A stretch of DNA of 64,000 nt, taken from the sequence record MZ574432.2; one strand, 5' to 3'. Position 1 is the stretch's first letter. Every line of letters begins with the position of its first letter. Shown piece by piece: positions 17,466 to 28,802 of this stretch. The translations under genes were made by a program, and so were the position numbers. The notes under the pieces are model-generated. The model was not told the origin of the DNA. It ran no database searches and saw nothing but the letters and a program-made list of their open reading frames with translations.

Positions 17466-17968
17466 GGGTCATCAACCTCTATGGCGGCCCAGGCGCTGGC
17501 AAGTCGACCACCAGGGCAGGCCTCTTCTATCAAATGAAGATGGCCCACCTCAAGGTCGAAGAAGCCCCTGAGTACGCCAAGGACCTGACCTACGAGAAGA
17601 ACTGGACGGCCCTGTCCAACCAGTGGCTCGTGATCGGCGAGCAGAACCATCGGCTCAACCGCCTGCGCGGGCAAGTCGACTACGCCGTCAGCGACAGCCC
17701 TCTGCCGCTGGGACTGATGTTCGCCACCCCGGCCTTCCAGACCGAGTGGTTCTCCGATGCTGTCTGGGGTCTCTACGACACCTACGACAACGTCAACGTG
17801 TTCATCGAGCGCGTCCAGCCCTATCAGGCGTTCGGGCGCAATCAGTCGGAAGATGAGGCACGCCTGATCGACCGAAAACTACGCCACCTGATGCGCGACC
17901 GGATCGACCTCTACGTCCCTGGCGACGAGAGCGCTCCGGCCCGGATCATGGGGTTCCTGGGCCTCTAA
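17462..17968 (+). CDS. P-loop NTPase/nucleotide kinase (NadR/AAA_28-like), 168 aa
   Basis: N-terminal INLYGGPGAGKST Walker A, EY..D, V.DSPL and GRNQ.E.EA..ID lid pattern. Confidence 0.8.
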   Translation: MRVINLYGGPGAGKSTTRAGLFYQMKMAHLKVEEAPEYAKDLTYEKNWTALSNQWLVIGEQNHRLNRLRGQVDYAVSDSPLPLGLMFATPAFQTEWFSDAVWGLYDTYDNVNVFIERVQPYQAFGRNQSEDEARLIDRKLRHLMRDRIDLYVPGDESAPARIMGFLGL

Positions 17969-17979
17969 GGCCCACCGGT

Positions 17980-18054
17980 GCGGCTATAGCTCAGTGGTAG
18001 AGCGCCTGCTTGCCATGCAGGAGGTCGAGGGTTCGAGCCCCTCTAGCCGCTCCA
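17980..18054 (+). tRNA. tRNA-Gly(GCC)
   Basis: Cloverleaf GCGGCTA/TAGCCGC, anticodon stem cctgc/gcagg, loop ttGCCat, U73, CCA. Confidence 0.95.
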
Positions 18055-18076
18055 TTCTAAGCACAAGGACAAGACT

Positions 18077-18337
18077 ATGAAATCGCGCGACTTCTGTTAT
18101 TGGCTCCAGGGCCTGTTCGAACTGCAAAACCCCGTGGTGATCAACGAGACCCAGACCCGCCTGATCAAGGCGCATCTGAACATGGTCTTCACCCACGAGA
18201 TCGACCCCAGCTTCCCGGCCGCCCAGCAGGCGGCGTTGAACGCCGATCACGAGGCCGGCAAGAAGCCCGCGTCGAAGAACAACGGCTTCTTCGAGATTGT
18301 CGATTCGGGCCGCCAAGAAGGCCTCATGCGCTGCTGA
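18077..18337 (+). CDS. Conserved phage hypothetical protein, 86 aa
   Basis: AAGGA SD; recurrent phage N-terminus M..RDFCYWLQG.FEL. Confidence 0.7.
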   Translation: MKSRDFCYWLQGLFELQNPVVINETQTRLIKAHLNMVFTHEIDPSFPAAQQAALNADHEAGKKPASKNNGFFEIVDSGRQEGLMRC

Positions 18338-18367
18338 CGCGGCGCCCACTTCCCAGGACAATTCATC

Positions 18368-18658
18368 ATGCAGACCGTCGACCTTCTGGGCGACGCGCCA
18401 TTCTGCGCGCGTCCAGGCTACCATCTGCGCGACTTCCGCAAGGGCGTACTGGGCGAGGCCTCCAAGGTCCGTGAGGAGACCGAGGAGTTCCTGGACGCCG
18501 TCGAGCAAGGCTCGCTGATCATGGCGTTGGTGGAGCTTTCCGATCTCCACGGCGCCATCGAAGCCTATCTGGCCAAGCATGCGCCGGGCGTCACCATGGA
18601 CGATCTCGCCCAAATGTCCGCCATCACCAAAAGGGCCTTCCGTCATGGACGTCGCTAG
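18368..18658 (+). CDS. MazG-like nucleotide pyrophosphohydrolase fold, 96 aa
   Basis: K..EE..E...A........ELSDL all-alpha NTP-PPase pattern. Confidence 0.65.
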   Translation: MQTVDLLGDAPFCARPGYHLRDFRKGVLGEASKVREETEEFLDAVEQGSLIMALVELSDLHGAIEAYLAKHAPGVTMDDLAQMSAITKRAFRHGRR

Positions 18659-19223
18659 CTGGAAACGCCTTTCGCAGGCGATCGAGTTCTACACCGCGCG
18701 CGGCTACACCTATGTCGACGCGCCCTGGGCCGTACGCCGGCCGGTCATGGACATGACCTGCCCGCGCCCCGATCTAGCCAGTCCTCTGGGCGAGAAGTTC
18801 CTGGTCGGTTCGGCCGAGCAGTCCTTCCTGGACCTGGAGATCGACGTCCTGGGCAAGGGACGCTTCGTGGCCTTGACGCCGTGTTTCCGCGTCGCCGATG
18901 AAGGCCGCTCACCGCTGCATGACGGCTACTTCATGAAGGTCGAGCTTTACGCCAATCTCACCGAGAACCGAGGGCGTGTCCTCAATCGCATGATCGACGA
19001 CGCCATGACCTGTTTCCGATCCTTCGGGGCCGGTGACCTGGACGTCTACAACACCTTCGAGCAGGACGCCAAGCTGACCCGCGACATCGTCATGCGCGGC
19101 GTGGAGATCGGCTCCTATGGCATGCGCACGCGTCGCCATCCCGTGCTCGACGAGGACCACACCTGGGTCTACGGCACTGGCCTTGCCGAACCGCGCTTCT
19201 CGCGCGCCCTCCAGCGCCTCTGA
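18645..19223 (+). CDS. Stand-alone class II aminoacyl-tRNA synthetase-like catalytic core, 192 aa
   Basis: Motif 2-like LTPCFRVADE...LHDGYFMKVELY and motif 3-like VYGTGLAEPRF; no anticodon-binding domain; ATG 18645 overlaps the upstream gene. Confidence 0.7.
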   Translation: MDVASWKRLSQAIEFYTARGYTYVDAPWAVRRPVMDMTCPRPDLASPLGEKFLVGSAEQSFLDLEIDVLGKGRFVALTPCFRVADEGRSPLHDGYFMKVELYANLTENRGRVLNRMIDDAMTCFRSFGAGDLDVYNTFEQDAKLTRDIVMRGVEIGSYGMRTRRHPVLDEDHTWVYGTGLAEPRFSRALQRL

Positions 19224-19234
19224 TTAGGATTTCA

Positions 19235-19258
19235 CGACACGCTGTCGTAATCCTTGAC
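19235..19258 (+). promoter_or_regulatory. Motif promoter (copy 3) with palindrome CGACA-N3-TGTCG
   Basis: cgaca-cgc-tgtcg-taatc-cttgac; predicted start site coincides with ATG 19290. Confidence 0.7.
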
Positions 19259-19289
19259 AAGCACGAATTTCTGTGAGACACGTCGCCTT

Positions 19290-19355
19290 ATGACCTTCTC
19301 GATCTTCCTTTTCCGAGAGACCGGCTCGCCGAGCCGAGATACCAGCGCCTCCTAG
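19290..19355 (+). CDS. Putative leader peptide 1 (MTFSIFLFRETGSPSRDTSAS, 21 aa)
   Basis: Apparently leaderless ATG at the predicted start site; overlaps alternative hairpins just before tRNA-Glu. Confidence 0.45.
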   Translation: MTFSIFLFRETGSPSRDTSAS

Positions 19356-19383
19356 GCTGCTGGTACGACGGCTCGCGCTATGT

Positions 19384-19460
19384 GGGCCTGTCTTCTAAAT
19401 GGACTAGGAATCTCGGCTTTCAATCGAGCAATGCGGGTTCGAGCCCCGTCAGGCCTACCA
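19384..19460 (+). tRNA. tRNA-Glu(UUC)
   Basis: GGGCCTG/CAGGCCT acceptor, loop ctTTCaa, TTCGA T-loop, CCA. Confidence 0.9.
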
Positions 19461-19484
19461 ACATCACAATCGAAAGCCACCCTG

Positions 19485-19560
19485 GGCTCTAGGGTGTGAA
19501 GGTTAGCAGCGCCGGCTTGTCAGGCCGGAGGAAGGGGTTCGAGTCCCCTTAGAGTCGCCA
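19485..19560 (+). tRNA. tRNA-Asp(GUC)
   Basis: GGCTCTA/TAGAGTC acceptor, stem ccggc/gccgg, loop ttGTCag, G73, CCA. Confidence 0.9.
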
Positions 19561-19808
19561 TTTGCCCAAGCGGGCACATCCAATCGAAAGCGCCGGGCAA
19601 GAGACTTAGCGGTCTCCAAGCGCCTGGGTCGAGCCAAAAACGCAGGGGTCGTCGGGTCCGCAAGGACAGCCCTGGTCAGTGAGCGATGGCGGATAAGAAA
19701 TGGGTCCCAACCTGCTGAAGGTGGTTGGCGCCGCCGAGGGCGTTACCTCGGATTTCACGTGACGACACTGCCCCACTGGCTTTTGCCATGCGCGTCCGTT
19801 GCTCTAGG
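19561..19808 (+). ncRNA. Candidate structured ncRNA (~250-290 nt) co-transcribed with tRNA-Glu/Asp
   Basis: No credible ORF; many short hairpins (GCAA-capped gtcc/ggac, gagac/gtctc, ccgagg/cctcgg), long-range gtcgtc/gacgac pairing, ends at a terminator. Confidence 0.5.
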
Positions 19809-19809
19809 A

Positions 19810-19848
19810 CCCCAGGACAGGCTAGCCCTCTCCTGGGGTTTCCTTTTT
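19810..19848 (+). terminator. Intrinsic terminator
   Basis: ccccagga...tcctgggg stem followed by tttcc-ttttt. Confidence 0.75.
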
Positions 19849-19888
19849 GTGGGACCCAAGAAATTTTTCACGGATTCGTGCATCGTTT

Positions 19889-19923
19889 CTTGACATCCTC
19901 TTGAGCCTGTGTCATAGGCTCAA
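19889..19923 (+). promoter_or_regulatory. Promoter of the large tRNA operon (CTTGACA; degenerate motif) overlapped by inverted repeat ttgagcct/aggctcaa
   Basis: TTGACA at 19890-19895 directly after a terminator; inverted repeat 19901-19923 covers the -10 region. Confidence 0.6.
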
Positions 19924-19969
19924 TCCTCAACAGCCCAGATCGGGCTTTCACTCCGCCGGAACAAGGTCC

Positions 19970-20089
19970 ATGACCCGCATCCATACCACGCTGACGACCG
20001 CCAAGCCCGCCTCCACCGGCGCGCTTACGCTCGCCTCGTGGCCGGCGTCGAGCAAGCCGCTATTGCGGCACTCAGCGGTTCTCGCCTAA
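19970..20089 (+). CDS. Putative leader peptide 2 (MTRIHTTLTTAKPASTGALTLASWPASSKPLLRHSAVLA, 39 aa)
   Basis: AAGG SD; 33/39 residues are amino acids of the 12 downstream tRNAs; end of ORF forms one arm of a long hairpin. Confidence 0.65.
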   Translation: MTRIHTTLTTAKPASTGALTLASWPASSKPLLRHSAVLA

Positions 20090-20214
20090 CAGGCGACCGC
20101 TCCGGGTGCCGCTTCTAAGCCGCACCCGATCTCTCCTCCGACACATCTTCCCAAAACGTCGTAGCTGAACCGGGTGCTCCTGATCTCTCAGGAGATCGCC
20201 ATCTATTTCAGTTT

Positions 20215-20290
20215 CGGTGTGTAGCTCAGTTGGTAGAGCACGGGGTTTGGGACCTCGGGGTCGGAGGTTCGAGCCCTCTTGCACCGACCA
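20215..20290 (+). tRNA. tRNA-Pro(UGG)
   Basis: CGGTGTG/TGCACCG acceptor, loop ttTGGga, CCA. Confidence 0.9.
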
Positions 20291-20360
20291 ATTCGCCCTC
20301 CGCCGGCCTTAGGCCGGACCGCGATCGCTTGAGCGTCGGCGGAGGCGTGTTCTTTGTCGT

Positions 20361-20439
20361 GCCGGTATAGCTCAGTCTGGTAGTCAGCGACTGCCTCGTA
20401 AGCAGTAGGTCCGGGGTTCGAATCCTCGTGCCGGCACCA
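20361..20439 (+). tRNA. tRNA-Thr(CGU)
   Basis: GCCGGTA/TGCCGGC, stem actgc/gcagt, loop ctCGTaa, CCA. Confidence 0.9.
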
Positions 20440-20483
20440 CCAAGAACACGATCAACAGAAGGATCAACAAGACACAGACTTTC

Positions 20484-20570
20484 GGGCGAGTAGCCGAGTG
20501 GTTAAAGGCACCTGACTCTTAATCAGGCGTGAGAAATCCTACGTGGGTTCGAATCCCACCTCGCCCTCCA
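20484..20570 (+). tRNA. tRNA-Lys(CUU) with atypical long variable arm
   Basis: GGGCGAG/CTCGCCC, stem cctga/tcagg, loop ctCTTaa, 15-nt variable region, U73, CCA; 87 nt. Confidence 0.85.
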
Positions 20571-20657
20571 TCGATAAAGACTTCCATGTTCCCGTACGGG
20601 AACATTTCGGCCAGGACAAGGGTCCTGGGATGGAAATGTTCCCGATCGGGATCACGG

Positions 20658-20744
20658 GCGGGTGTGGCGAAGTTGGTAGCCGCGCGAGTCTCAGGTACTC
20701 GTGGTCGAAAGGCCGGGGAGGTTCGAATCCTCTCACCCGCACCA
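20658..20744 (+). tRNA. tRNA-Leu(CAG)
   Basis: GCGGGTG/CACCCGC, stem cgagt/actcg, loop ctCAGgt, long variable arm, A73, CCA. Confidence 0.92.
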
Positions 20745-20756
20745 ACACTCCTCTGG

Positions 20757-20843
20757 GCGGCGCTGGCGGAATGGTAGACGCGCCGGCTTCAAGTCCCGTG
20801 TGTCCGTAAGGATGTCCGAGTTCGAATCTCGGGCGCCGCACCA
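20757..20843 (+). tRNA. tRNA-Leu(CAA), weak anticodon stem
   Basis: GCGGCGC/GCGCCGC, Leu-type D arm and variable arm, loop ttCAAgt; stem ccggc/cccgt has two mismatches. Confidence 0.75.
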
Positions 20844-20886
20844 AGACGAGGGTTGGCGATGGAAAGCGAAGGTCAAAGCGAGACGT

Positions 20887-20973
20887 GCGGAAGTGGCGTA
20901 ACGGTAGCCGCGCCAGACTGAGTATCTGGTGATCTAAAGGGTCGTGGAGGTTCGAGTCCTCTCTTCCGCACCA
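20887..20973 (+). tRNA. tRNA-Leu(GAG)
   Basis: GCGGAAG/CTTCCGC, stem ccaga/tctgg, loop ctGAGta, long variable arm, CCA. Confidence 0.92.
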
Positions 20974-21008
20974 AACACAAGGAGAGGTAAGAGACAGATT
21001 TGGTTTGT

Positions 21009-21080
21009 GCTGAAATGGCCTAGCGGTAAAGGCGCTGCATTGTGGATGCAGACACGATGGTTCGAATCCATCTTTCAGTG
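21009..21080 (+). tRNA. tRNA-His(GUG), no encoded CCA, no G-1
   Basis: GCTGAAA/TTTCAGT, stem ctgca/tgcag, loop ttGTGga; abuts tRNA-Ala with a 1-nt spacer. Confidence 0.85.
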
Positions 21081-21081
21081 C

Positions 21082-21157
21082 GGGGATATAGCTCAGTTGG
21101 TAGAGCAGTTGCTTTGCAAGCATCAGGTCGTCGGTTCGAGCCCGACTATCTCCACCA
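21082..21157 (+). tRNA. tRNA-Ala(UGC)
   Basis: GGGGATA/TATCTCC with G3:U70, loop ttTGCaa, CCA. Confidence 0.92.
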
Positions 21158-21222
21158 GACCAGGGGACCCAGGCTGCGGCGCCGGATCGGCGACCACCTG
21201 GGTCCGTGACAACAAGAAAACT

Positions 21223-21316
21223 GGAGGGCTGGCAGAGCCTGGGTTAATGCACCCGTTTCGAAAACGGGCAGGGGCTGAAAGGTCCCTCGGGGGTTCAAAT
21301 CCCTCGCCCTCCGCCA
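21223..21316 (+). tRNA. tRNA-Ser(CGA)
   Basis: GGAGGGC/GCCCTCC, stem cccgt/acggg, loop ttCGAaa, long variable arm, G73, CCA. Confidence 0.92.
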
Positions 21317-21335
21317 ACACCAAGCCGGCATCTTT

Positions 21336-21427
21336 GGAAGGATGGCTGAGCCGGCTGAAAGCACCCGCCTGGAAAGTGGGTCGACCTCACAAGGGTCGCG
21401 GGGGTTCGAATCCCTCTCCTTCCGCCA
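21336..21427 (+). tRNA. tRNA-Ser(GGA)
   Basis: GGAAGGA/TCCTTCC, loop ctGGAaa, long variable arm, G73, CCA. Confidence 0.92.
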
Positions 21428-21462
21428 GATACCGAGCCGGCGCGGATCGCCGGCCGAAGCTA

Positions 21463-21552
21463 GGTGGGTTGACCGAGTGGTAAGGTGCGCGGTTGCTAAC
21501 CGCAGGTCAGCCTGGAAGGGCTGCGGGGGTTCGATCCCCTCACCCACCGCCA
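21463..21552 (+). tRNA. tRNA-Ser(GCU)
   Basis: GGTGGGT/ACCCACC, loop ttGCTaa, long variable arm, G73, CCA. Confidence 0.92.
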
Positions 21553-21567
21553 TAGCTTCGACGATGC

Positions 21568-21644
21568 AGGGGTGTAGCTCAACTGGCTAGAGCGTCGGTC
21601 TCCAAAACCGAAGGTTGCGGGTTCGAGTCCCGCCGCCCCTGCCA
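21568..21644 (+). tRNA. tRNA-Trp(CCA)
   Basis: AGGGGTG/CGCCCCT, stem tcggt/accga, loop ctCCAaa, G73, CCA. Confidence 0.92.
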
Positions 21645-21666
21645 ACATTTTCCGCGATTCAGGACC

Positions 21667-21945
21667 ATGACCAAGAAAGGAGGACCCCTGATGAAACCCG
21701 CACCCACTATGACCCAATGCCGCTTGACGCGCGGTGACCAGGGCGTCCAAGTCTCCTGGATTCCCAGCGAGTTCGCCCAGGTCGGCCGCATCGTCGATCT
21801 GAAGGAAAAGGACTACTGGTCCAACGGCTGGCGGGTCGACCAGACCTGGGGCACCATGGACGCCAGCGTGATCGCCGATCGCAGTCGAGATCACCTCAAC
21901 CACAGCAAGGCCACCGGCGATCGATGGCCCACCGCCCGCGCCTAG
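21667..21945 (+). CDS. Hypothetical protein, 92 aa (start could be 21691)
   Basis: AGGA and GGAGG SD sites; last ORF before a terminator. Confidence 0.7.
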   Translation: MTKKGGPLMKPAPTMTQCRLTRGDQGVQVSWIPSEFAQVGRIVDLKEKDYWSNGWRVDQTWGTMDASVIADRSRDHLNHSKATGDRWPTARA

Positions 21946-21948
21946 CGC

Positions 21949-21982
21949 AAAAAGGCCGCCCAGGTCTCCCTGGGCGGCCTTT
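21949..21982. terminator. Bidirectional terminator
   Basis: aaaaaggccgcccagg-tct-ccctgggcggccttt between convergent genes. Confidence 0.8.
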
Positions 21983-21988
21983 CACGTT

Positions 21989-22489
21989 CTAGGCGTGTGG
22001 TGGGAAGTCACCCGTCAGGACGCCCGCCGTGCGCGCGTAGCAGAACCAGTAGGAGCCGGTCCAGCGCAGCATGGCCACTTCGGGGACATGCACGGCCTCG
22101 ACAAGGCGTTGATAGCCTGTGCCATCGCCCTCAGTATCCGCTTTGCCGTCCATATCCACATCAGGCTGCGAGGCCTGGGGAACCTGTAAGGTCAGAGCCG
22201 CCGAAACATCGGAGAAGACGATGCGAGGGTTTGCGACCCCGTAGTGAGGACGTGCGAAGACGACAACCTGAGAGGAGCCAAAGGCCGTATTTGTCCTCGG
22301 ATAGAACTGAAGCTGAAGCTCATCGCCGACTTCCGTCGCCGGCATGAGCGAAGCGTAGAAGGACCCTTGAAACGGTTGATCGGGATCGACTTGCTTCGTG
22401 TAGATGTCGATGATGCCGACCTCGCCATTGGCGTTCAGGATTTCGGCGGCGGCCTCGTAGACCGTGTTGATGACGATGGTTCTGGACAT
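21989..22489 (-). CDS. Hypothetical protein, 166 aa (paralog 1 of a tandem pair)
   Basis: Shares HYGVANPRIVF, D.DGKAD.EGDG.GYQRL and LRWTGS.WFCYAR with 22510-22995. Confidence 0.8.
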   Translation of the reverse strand: MSRTIVINTVYEAAAEILNANGEVGIIDIYTKQVDPDQPFQGSFYASLMPATEVGDELQLQFYPRTNTAFGSSQVVVFARPHYGVANPRIVFSDVSAALTLQVPQASQPDVDMDGKADTEGDGTGYQRLVEAVHVPEVAMLRWTGSYWFCYARTAGVLTGDFPPHA

Positions 22490-28723: not shown

Positions 28724-28802
28724 GCCCGGTTAGCTCAGCGGAATTAAGAGCAGACGCCTACGAAGCGTAAGGTCGGGGGTTCGAATCCCTCACCGGGTGC
28801 CA
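28724..28802 (+). tRNA. tRNA-Arg(ACG)
   Basis: GCCCGGT/ACCGGGT, loop ctACGaa, CCA. Confidence 0.9.

Follow-up and report, generated by a model that had tools for sequence, protein, structure and literature searches.

The tRNA-Lys(CUU) gene of Caulobacter phage BL47

The 327-kb genome of Caulobacter phage BL47 (MZ574432.2), a member of the genus Bertelyvirus, encodes a tRNA in which a lysine anticodon and a long variable arm are combined. By the textbook rule, long variable arms in bacteria belong to tRNAs for serine, leucine, tyrosine and selenocysteine. The gene lies in the stretch of 64,000 nucleotides (nt) analysed here (the window), in which coordinates are those of the record minus 62000 and all features described are on the + strand. 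Positions 17500-22000 of the window match BL47 with 100% identity. ARAGORN calls it tRNA-Lys(ctt) at 20484-20570, with 87 nt including the encoded CCA and a class II (long-arm) shape, and GenBank records label it plain tRNA-Lys. It belongs to the tRNA family, as Rfam RF00005 matched 20484-20567 with 66.2 bits (gathering score 29, E 7e-13). The acceptor stem has 7 bp, formed by the 5' strand GGGCGAG (20484-20490) and positions 20560-20566. The D arm (20493-20509) is of class II type, with a 3-bp stem GCC/GGC and a loop of 11 nt. The anticodon arm (20511-20527) has a 5-bp stem (20511-20515/20523-20527) and the loop CUCUUAA, in which both ARAGORN and the sequence itself give the anticodon CUU (20518-20520), a reader of AAG. 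The variable region (20528-20542) has 15 nt and consists of a C, the stem GUGA/UCCU capped by GAAA, and a final AC. It is followed by the T arm GUGGG UUCGAAU CCCAC (20543-20559), the discriminator U73 (20567) and the genome-encoded CCA end (20568-20570). The variable region of more than 10 nt with a stem-loop, the 3-bp D stem and the enlarged D loop place the tRNA in class II. Among the features that define tRNA-Lys, the YUU anticodon (Y, pyrimidine) with U35 and U36 is present, and A73 and a variable loop of 4-5 nt are absent. An earlier sequence-only reading of this stretch had listed the length, the class II D arm, the 15-nt variable region, U73 and CUU, and all of these are correct by the sequence, ARAGORN and Rfam. 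The GA-GAAA-UC mini-hairpin that it pointed out is also there, inside the four-position GUGA/UCCU stem.

With the register set by homology with relatives, two of the four positions of this extra-arm stem are Watson-Crick pairs, the others being a U-C mismatch and a G-U pair. The arm aligns with clean GUGA-GAAA-UCAC arms in relatives, in which the homologous arms are clean 4-bp stems with GNRA loops (N, any base; R, purine). Free folding of the BL47 tRNA to minimum free energy gave no cloverleaf (z-score -2.79), as is usual for single tRNA sequences, and such a single-sequence fold was judged uninformative.

The BL47 tRNA is like canonical bacterial tRNA-Lys in its anticodon CUU, U33 and A37, in the pairs U29:A41, G30:C40 and A31:U39, and in the 7/5 architecture (acceptor/T stem). 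Its acceptor stem begins with GGGCG, as does that of a Lys(CUU) from an alphaproteobacterial metagenome-assembled genome (MAG; L050). Unlike canonical tRNA-Lys, it has a hairpin in the variable region, a D stem of 3 bp that closes a large loop, and U73 instead of A73. The long variable arm and the D arm are shared with bacterial Ser, Leu and Tyr tRNAs, and the arm geometry is nearest to that of tRNA-Tyr. However, it differs from these tRNAs in its Lys anticodon and in its discriminator, which is not the G of Ser or the A of Leu and Tyr, and its arm stem falls short of that of tRNA-Ser in length and regularity.

The tRNA is 100% identical in the phages CcrBL9, CcrSC, RB23, C1, C2 and J4, whereas the surrounding 4.5 kb are only 84-88% identical in CcrBL9 and CcrSC. 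At the syntenic position, directly before three Leu tRNAs, the Colossusviruses CcrColossus and CcrPW, which are of another genus, carry a tRNA(CUU) of 90 nt. This homologue has U73 and a clean GGAC-GAAA-GUCC arm. Comparison of CcrColossus with BL47 revealed double changes at the pairs 4:69 (C:G in BL47, U:A in CcrColossus), 10:25 (G:C in BL47, C:G in CcrColossus), 27:43 and 28:42. The complete identity of the tRNA within diverged flanks and the compensatory changes in the Colossusvirus homologue indicate, as far as sequence comparison goes, that the BL47 long-arm tRNA is under purifying selection. The closest blastn relative outside the Caulobacter phages is a Rhizobium phage tRNA-Ser(ACU), to which the D arm, anticodon stem and T arm of the BL47 tRNA are 85% identical.

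The gene is the third in a run of 12 tRNA genes (20215-21644; Pro, Thr, Lys, Leu x3, His, Ala, Ser x3, Trp), the order of which is the same in CcrBL9 and CcrSC. BL47 has 27 tRNAs in total, covering 19 amino acids, that is, every amino acid but tyrosine, and the long-arm CUU copy is its sole Lys tRNA. Tyr, the isotype missing from BL47, is the third class II isotype, and the examined CcrColossus stretches contain no Tyr tRNA either. Directly upstream of the long-arm Lys gene lies tRNA-Thr(CGU) (20361-20439), which has 79 nt and an enlarged D region, as does tRNA-Arg(ACG) at 28724-28802 (79 nt). Upstream of the run, an open reading frame (ORF) of 39 codons (19970-20089, coding sequence gp151) contains two AAG codons. 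Most of the residues that it encodes are amino acids for which the run downstream has tRNAs (Thr, Leu, Ala, Ser, Pro, His, Trp and Lys). CcrColossus encodes further long-arm tRNAs, namely Trp(CCA) (L009:341-426, 86 nt, discriminator G), Asn(GUU) (L010:755-843, 89 nt, G), Arg(ACG) (L010:860-956, 97 nt, G), Cys(GCA) (L011:217-303, 87 nt, U) and Met/Ile2(CAU) (L011:1538-1624, 87 nt, U). The BL47 counterparts of these tRNAs are of normal length.

Long-arm tRNA-Lys genes across phages

Relatives were searched for with a pattern made of the anticodon arm and the T loop, separated by a gap too long for a class I (short-arm) tRNA. In IMG/VR, 28 contigs matched the CUU pattern and 51 the UUU pattern, and many of these contigs are 100-580 kb long. 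The G+C content of the fetched IMG/VR stretches is 27-55%, and that of the family overall 27-65%. ARAGORN detected 923 distinct tRNAs on the fetched stretches, and 81 of them are long-arm tRNA-Lys, 55 with the anticodon UUU and 26 with CUU, from 65 phage DNA stretches. The discriminator (N73) of these 81 is A in 70 and U in 11, and G occurs in none. Most members have a class II type D arm, and the typical extra arm has a stem of 3-4 bp and a four-base loop, which is GNRA in 45/81 and GAAA in 30/81. Three or four unpaired bases follow the arm stem on its 3' side in 33 of the first 41 members examined. The BL47 tRNA fits the family definition, since it has a Lys anticodon, a short tetraloop-capped arm, the 7/5 architecture and a similar body. 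The cultured phages Ruegeria phage vB_RpoS-V10 and Xanthomonas phage X1 each encode one long-arm Lys(CUU) with A73.

The 81 members have 57 distinct arm stems. The acceptor positions are 95-98% paired across the family, with 4-6 pair types each. MAFFT alignments of the 81 members and of 14 relatives put the extra arm and the D arm out of register, RNAalifold on these alignments missed both arms, and column-wise counts failed. A set of nine gapless family members, BL47 not among them, was used for covariation instead. In this set, 97.2% of the cells of the five-helix structure form pairs, compared with 74% when shuffled and about 40% when slid, and pairing of the extra helix is complete (100%), both sides having changed in three of its four pairs.

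Within one phage, CUU and UUU long-arm copies have common acceptor stems, which indicates that they are paralogues. A normal short Lys tRNA is also present in 39 of the 65 stretches, and both forms occur with the same anticodon in 31. Four members have a class I D arm plus a hairpin inserted in the variable loop, which points to independent gain of the arm. A comparator scan for the short form matched at least 118 contigs, many of the matches being at contig ends. Retention of UCA at positions 39-41 in long- and short-arm copies is a circular comparison because the scans selected on that string.

An 89-nt long-arm tRNA of Cellulophaga phage phi4:1 (L219:591-679), which ARAGORN reads as Asn(GUU), is labelled tRNA-OTHER / tRNA-Pseudo in RefSeq, and labelling of this kind probably hides further long-arm members. 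We also observed tRNAs with the anticodon CUA (called Pyl by ARAGORN; amber suppressor-like) that share arrays with long-arm Lys (L019, L035, L062, L079), which hints at stop-codon recoding in some phages. A full-text literature search turned up no account of this phage-wide family of long-arm tRNA-Lys, to which the allo-tRNAs and nev-tRNAs come nearest.

One scan of 185,579 species genomes with the CUU pattern gave 11 matches, of which three have a long variable region, all inside tRNA arrays. Two of these carry a true arm, one in an acidobacterial MAG and the other on a MAG contig whose length and tRNAs equal those of an IMG/VR phage. The third, from a cyanobacterial array, has a 10-nt loop. 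Among the remaining eight, five are otherwise ordinary tRNA-Lys that contain internal duplications or gaps, one is a normal tRNA-Lys of 73 nt, and two had no tRNA call. Class I tRNA-Lys(CUU) genes with a short duplication of the anticodon loop/variable region, or with an insert postulated by ARAGORN, were observed on bacterial MAG contigs (L042, L043, L047, L049, L050). These duplications may be assembly artefacts or small insertions, in either case outside the long-arm family.

Amino acid identity of the BL47 tRNA

The 29 long ORFs of the window use AAG at 37.5 and AAA at 1.3 per 1000 codons, so that AAG makes up 97% of the Lys codons and about one codon in 27. Misreading of AAG would therefore be costly to the phage. 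We compared the body of the BL47 tRNA with profiles from which the anticodon arm and the T-loop core, which are fixed by the scans, had been removed, and from whose training the Caulobacter phages had been left out. The BL47 tRNA scored 25.9 bits with long-arm Lys, 10.5 with Tyr, 7.4 with Ser and 3.0 with Leu, and the phage's own Ser and Leu tRNAs were sorted correctly. Among Ser tRNAs from the same phage stretches, G73 is found in 27/33, stems of 5-7 bp in 31/33 and a single trailing base in 23/33. The BL47 tRNA differs from them in having U73, a stem of 2-4 positions, two trailing bases and CUU. Every one of the 27 Tyr and 35 Leu long-arm tRNAs of the phage set has A73, and here too U73 and the anticodon CUU do not fit. 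The discriminators of the other long-arm isotypes are G in Asn (10/10) and Trp (3/3), U in Thr (10/10) and Cys (3/3), and A in Ile (8/8). This retention of the isotype-typical discriminator suggests that the arm was added to tRNAs that kept their identity. The occurrence of both Lys anticodons in the family, the absence of G73, the isotype-typical N73 elsewhere, the body profile and the cost of misreading together suggest that the BL47 tRNA most likely inserts lysine at AAG.

The main determinants for lysyl-tRNA synthetase (LysRS) are U35 and U36 in the anticodon, and A73 is marginal for class I LysRS (PMC9976931). This rule for class I was derived from Borrelia alone, where G2-U71 is required as well. 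For the host, the family searches included a Caulobacter vibrioides genome as a control, in which class I LysRS was present and a class II LysRS was not found at E 1e-80. The two classes were told apart by TIGR00467 and TIGR00499 with strict E-values. PF01921 was rejected as a class marker because it matched 13 of 14 genomes and did not separate the classes. In a sample of 401 genomes from the taxonomic class to which an alphaproteobacterial (Hyphomicrobiales) genome belongs, 284 have class I LysRS. Since class I LysRS is reported to depend little on base 73, U73 should cost little. Class I LysRS is unlikely to be a general explanation of why the arm is tolerated, because the family spans 27-65% G+C and includes a Xanthomonas phage. 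A discriminator other than A excludes leucyl- and tyrosyl-tRNA synthetases (LeuRS, TyrRS) (PMC9976931), and a bulge in the extra arm blocks seryl-tRNA synthetase (SerRS) (PMC7590224). On these rules, U73 and the imperfect arm of the BL47 tRNA should exclude SerRS, LeuRS and TyrRS.

A gene 1.3 kb upstream of the tRNA (18645-19223) encodes a protein of 192 aa that matches PHROG 4806, which is labelled histidyl-tRNA synthetase. The protein resembles a bare class II synthetase catalytic core, aligning over its whole length, and its nearest Atlas clusters are almost all viral, with proteins of about 183-199 aa and 50-105 members each. It had no Pfam match, and its matches to aspartyl-tRNA synthetase (AspRS) in PDB (E 0.07) and to EpmA (E 0.085) were weak. 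Beside the core, 192 aa leave too little room for an anticodon-binding domain (AspRS has 438 aa). This mini-synthetase was found in 5 of 40 phage contigs with long-arm tRNA-Lys, three of the five being Caulobacter phages, which indicates that it is no general partner of the tRNA. The sequence-only reading had offered charging with another amino acid, possibly by this protein, as one of two options. The comparison lends that option no support, given the 5/40 co-occurrence and the lack of G73, of a Ser-type arm and of A73.

Possible function of the extra arm

The other option of that reading was a Lys tRNA remodelled to evade nucleases that target tRNA-Lys. Its Lys half is strengthened by the comparative evidence, the codon load and the host LysRS, and its evasion half stays a proposal, which we develop here. 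AriB, the nuclease of the PARIS system, depletes tRNA-Lys(UUU), Thr(UGU), Asn(GUU) and Thr(CGU); it cuts between positions 40 and 41 and needs U16 in the D loop and other body contacts (PMC12409363). Thr(CGU), a reported secondary target of AriB, is the isotype that adjoins the long-arm Lys in BL47. Among the long-arm tRNAs other than Lys, 34 of 54 have anticodons with U36, compared with 190 of 594 short tRNAs (p 1e-5). The main U36 isotypes among them are Asn(GUU) (10), Thr(UGU) (10), Ile(UAU) (8) and Met (4). Long-arm tRNAs for Trp (3) and Cys (3) also recur in these stretches. Ile(UAU) has eight long-arm and three short copies in the IMG/VR stretches.

We propose that the BL47 tRNA would be a working elongator for AAG, charged with lysine through its intact U35 and U36. 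U73 and the imperfect arm would insulate it against the three synthetases that accept long arms, as SerRS wants G73 and a regular arm of 5-7 bp and LeuRS and TyrRS want A73, at little cost with the host LysRS. Nucleases that recognise the tRNA body, AriB for example, would be impeded by the changed D loop and by the hairpin leaving the core next to positions 40-44, and the anticodon stem-loop would stay intact for LysRS and the ribosome. The phage would thus retain a lysine decoder once host tRNA-Lys is destroyed. Evasion by the extra arm would be the most economical explanation and is plausible in view of the overlap with AriB targets, the reading of the D loop by AriB and the position of its cut site. 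We give an even chance to the reading as a whole, that is, to a working Lys-inserting elongator whose extra arm is probably protective against body-reading nucleases. Its extension to the family is held more tentatively, at somewhat less than an even chance: large phages of many host groups may carry "armoured" tRNAs, mainly for Lys and to a lesser extent for Thr(UGU), Asn(GUU), Ile(UAU) and Met, which are charged normally and go unseen by body-reading nucleases.

Several observations weigh against this proposal. In the BL47 tRNA, position 73 is U, not A as in cellular tRNA-Lys and most members of the family, G2-C71 takes the place of the G2-U71 of Borrelia, and the extra arm, with its two Watson-Crick pairs, is weaker than the family norm. 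For most family members, some mischarging by TyrRS or LeuRS is conceivable, since they have A73, U35 and a Tyr-like arm. The BL47 anticodon arm preserves, at positions 36-41, the exact string UAAUCA that AriB cuts between C and A. The overlap of isotypes with AriB targets comes from stretches that were chosen for long-arm Lys, and several long-arm isotypes, namely Trp, Cys, His, Gly and Gln, are not targeted by AriB. Furthermore, a search of the C. vibrioides control genome for AriB-like (DUF4435) and PrrC-like genes found none, so the host has no known nuclease of the relevant kind. Separately, the idea of a nuclease encoded by the phages themselves was dropped because no DUF4435 or PrrC-like gene was present in BL47, CcrColossus, Ruegeria phage V10, Xanthomonas phage X1 or one IMG/VR phage.

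The tRNA could also be a Lys tRNA that has its arm for a purpose other than evasion, as a handle for a protein or modification enzyme of the phage, a nuclease decoy, an element for processing or stability of long tRNA transcripts, or for a non-ribosomal use of Lys-tRNA. We consider this unlikely but a serious contender. GNRA tips in 45/81 members are what would be expected of a docking or protein-binding hairpin, the coexistence of a normal and a long copy with the same anticodon in 31/65 stretches suggests two jobs, and viral tRNAs have been raised as possible AriB inhibitors (PMC12409363). However, a partner protein was not found, the neighbouring mini-synthetase being limited to 5/40 contigs, and BL47 and the Colossusviruses have no phage Lys tRNA besides the long-arm copy, which must therefore take part in ordinary decoding there if a Lys tRNA is needed at all. 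It is rather improbable that the arm is a relic without selected function, left when a Tyr- or Ser-like phage tRNA gene took a Lys anticodon. Compensatory change maintains the arm helix across very diverse phages, and the four members in which a hairpin was gained on a class I Lys body argue for selection on the arm. In addition, the true long-arm copies in cellular genomes were found only inside tRNA arrays. Such an origin would nevertheless fit the arm geometry (3-4 bp, tetraloop, 3-4 trailing bases), which is like that of tRNA-Tyr from the same stretches, the second rank of Tyr among the body profiles, the 85% identical Rhizobium phage tRNA-Ser(ACU), the absence of a tRNA-Tyr from BL47 and the partly decayed arm stem of the BL47 tRNA.

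Charging with Ser, Tyr or Leu, by a host synthetase for class II tRNAs or by the phage mini-synthetase, for deliberate misreading of AAG is more improbable still. Although the class II body, the non-canonical discriminator and the synthetase-core-like gene upstream would suit it, and nematode nev-tRNAs and bacterial allo-tRNAs are precedents (PMC5389517), G73 occurs in 0/81 members, and U73 leaves LeuRS and TyrRS without their required A73. Compared with the Ser arms of 5-7 bp and one trailing base, the BL47 arm is short and imperfect, and the long-arm form exists for both Lys isoacceptors. With AAG at one codon in 27, every phage protein would be damaged, and the mini-synthetase does not travel with the tRNA and is too short for an anticodon-binding domain. 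We find it very hard to credit that the gene is a non-functional tRNA-like pseudogene, as the pseudo-tRNA label of the related long-arm tRNA of phage phi4:1 might suggest. ARAGORN reads that tRNA as Asn(GUU), and the BL47 gene has a high Rfam score, an intact CCA and a place in a conserved run of tRNAs; it is perfectly conserved within Bertelyvirus against 84-88% in the flanks, and compensatory changes are found in the Colossusviruses.

Several known systems help to place the proposed armoured lysine tRNA. The nematode nev-tRNAs of Hamashima et al. are reportedly charged with leucine, the body keeping Leu identity. They are like the BL47 tRNA in joining an extra-arm body to the anticodon of a class I isotype (cited in PMC5389517). 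They differ in being eukaryotic and in having Gly or Ile anticodons, and the discriminators of the phage long-arm tRNAs follow the anticodon isotype. The allo-tRNAs likewise have a long extra arm and anticodons other than Ser, Leu and Tyr, a Lys anticodon occurring once among them; they are interpreted as Ser acceptors, their stems being 8/4 or 9/3, their D arm like that of tRNA-Sec and their discriminator G73 or U73 (PMC5389517). Unlike them, the BL47 tRNA has a 7-bp acceptor and a 5-bp T stem, so that it lacks the architecture by which allo-tRNAs are recognised, and N73 of its family is mostly A. Streptomyces has type I and type II tRNA-Leu that are charged by one LeuRS, so a synthetase can accept an isotype with or without the long arm; there the change goes in the opposite direction, a class II isotype losing its arm, and is cellular, not viral (PMC6614811). 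The closest parallel in principle is phage T5's tRNA-Lys(UUU), which neutralises PARIS as a phage Lys tRNA that replaces the destroyed host tRNA-Lys, the principle proposed here (PMC11464382, PMC12409363). T5 tRNA-Lys escapes through point substitutions at U39, A41 and U16 in a class I body, whereas the BL47 tRNA, judged from the genes alone, is host-like at positions 36-41 and changed in the body.

In summary, a long-arm tRNA-Lys breaks the textbook rule and is no one-off, since 81 examples were found in 65 stretches and the form occurs in cultured Caulobacter, Ruegeria and Xanthomonas phages. The finding is also relevant to annotation, as some long-arm genes are now labelled pseudo-tRNAs. 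If these tRNAs are charged with lysine, a class II body would be tolerated by both classes of LysRS, and the family would offer natural, orthogonal-looking scaffolds for tRNA engineering and a testable idea of how phages harden their tRNAs against tRNA-cutting immune systems. If this idea is true, armoured tRNAs would give phages another way of tRNA-based counter-defence, one that works through structure, next to the point mutations of T5.

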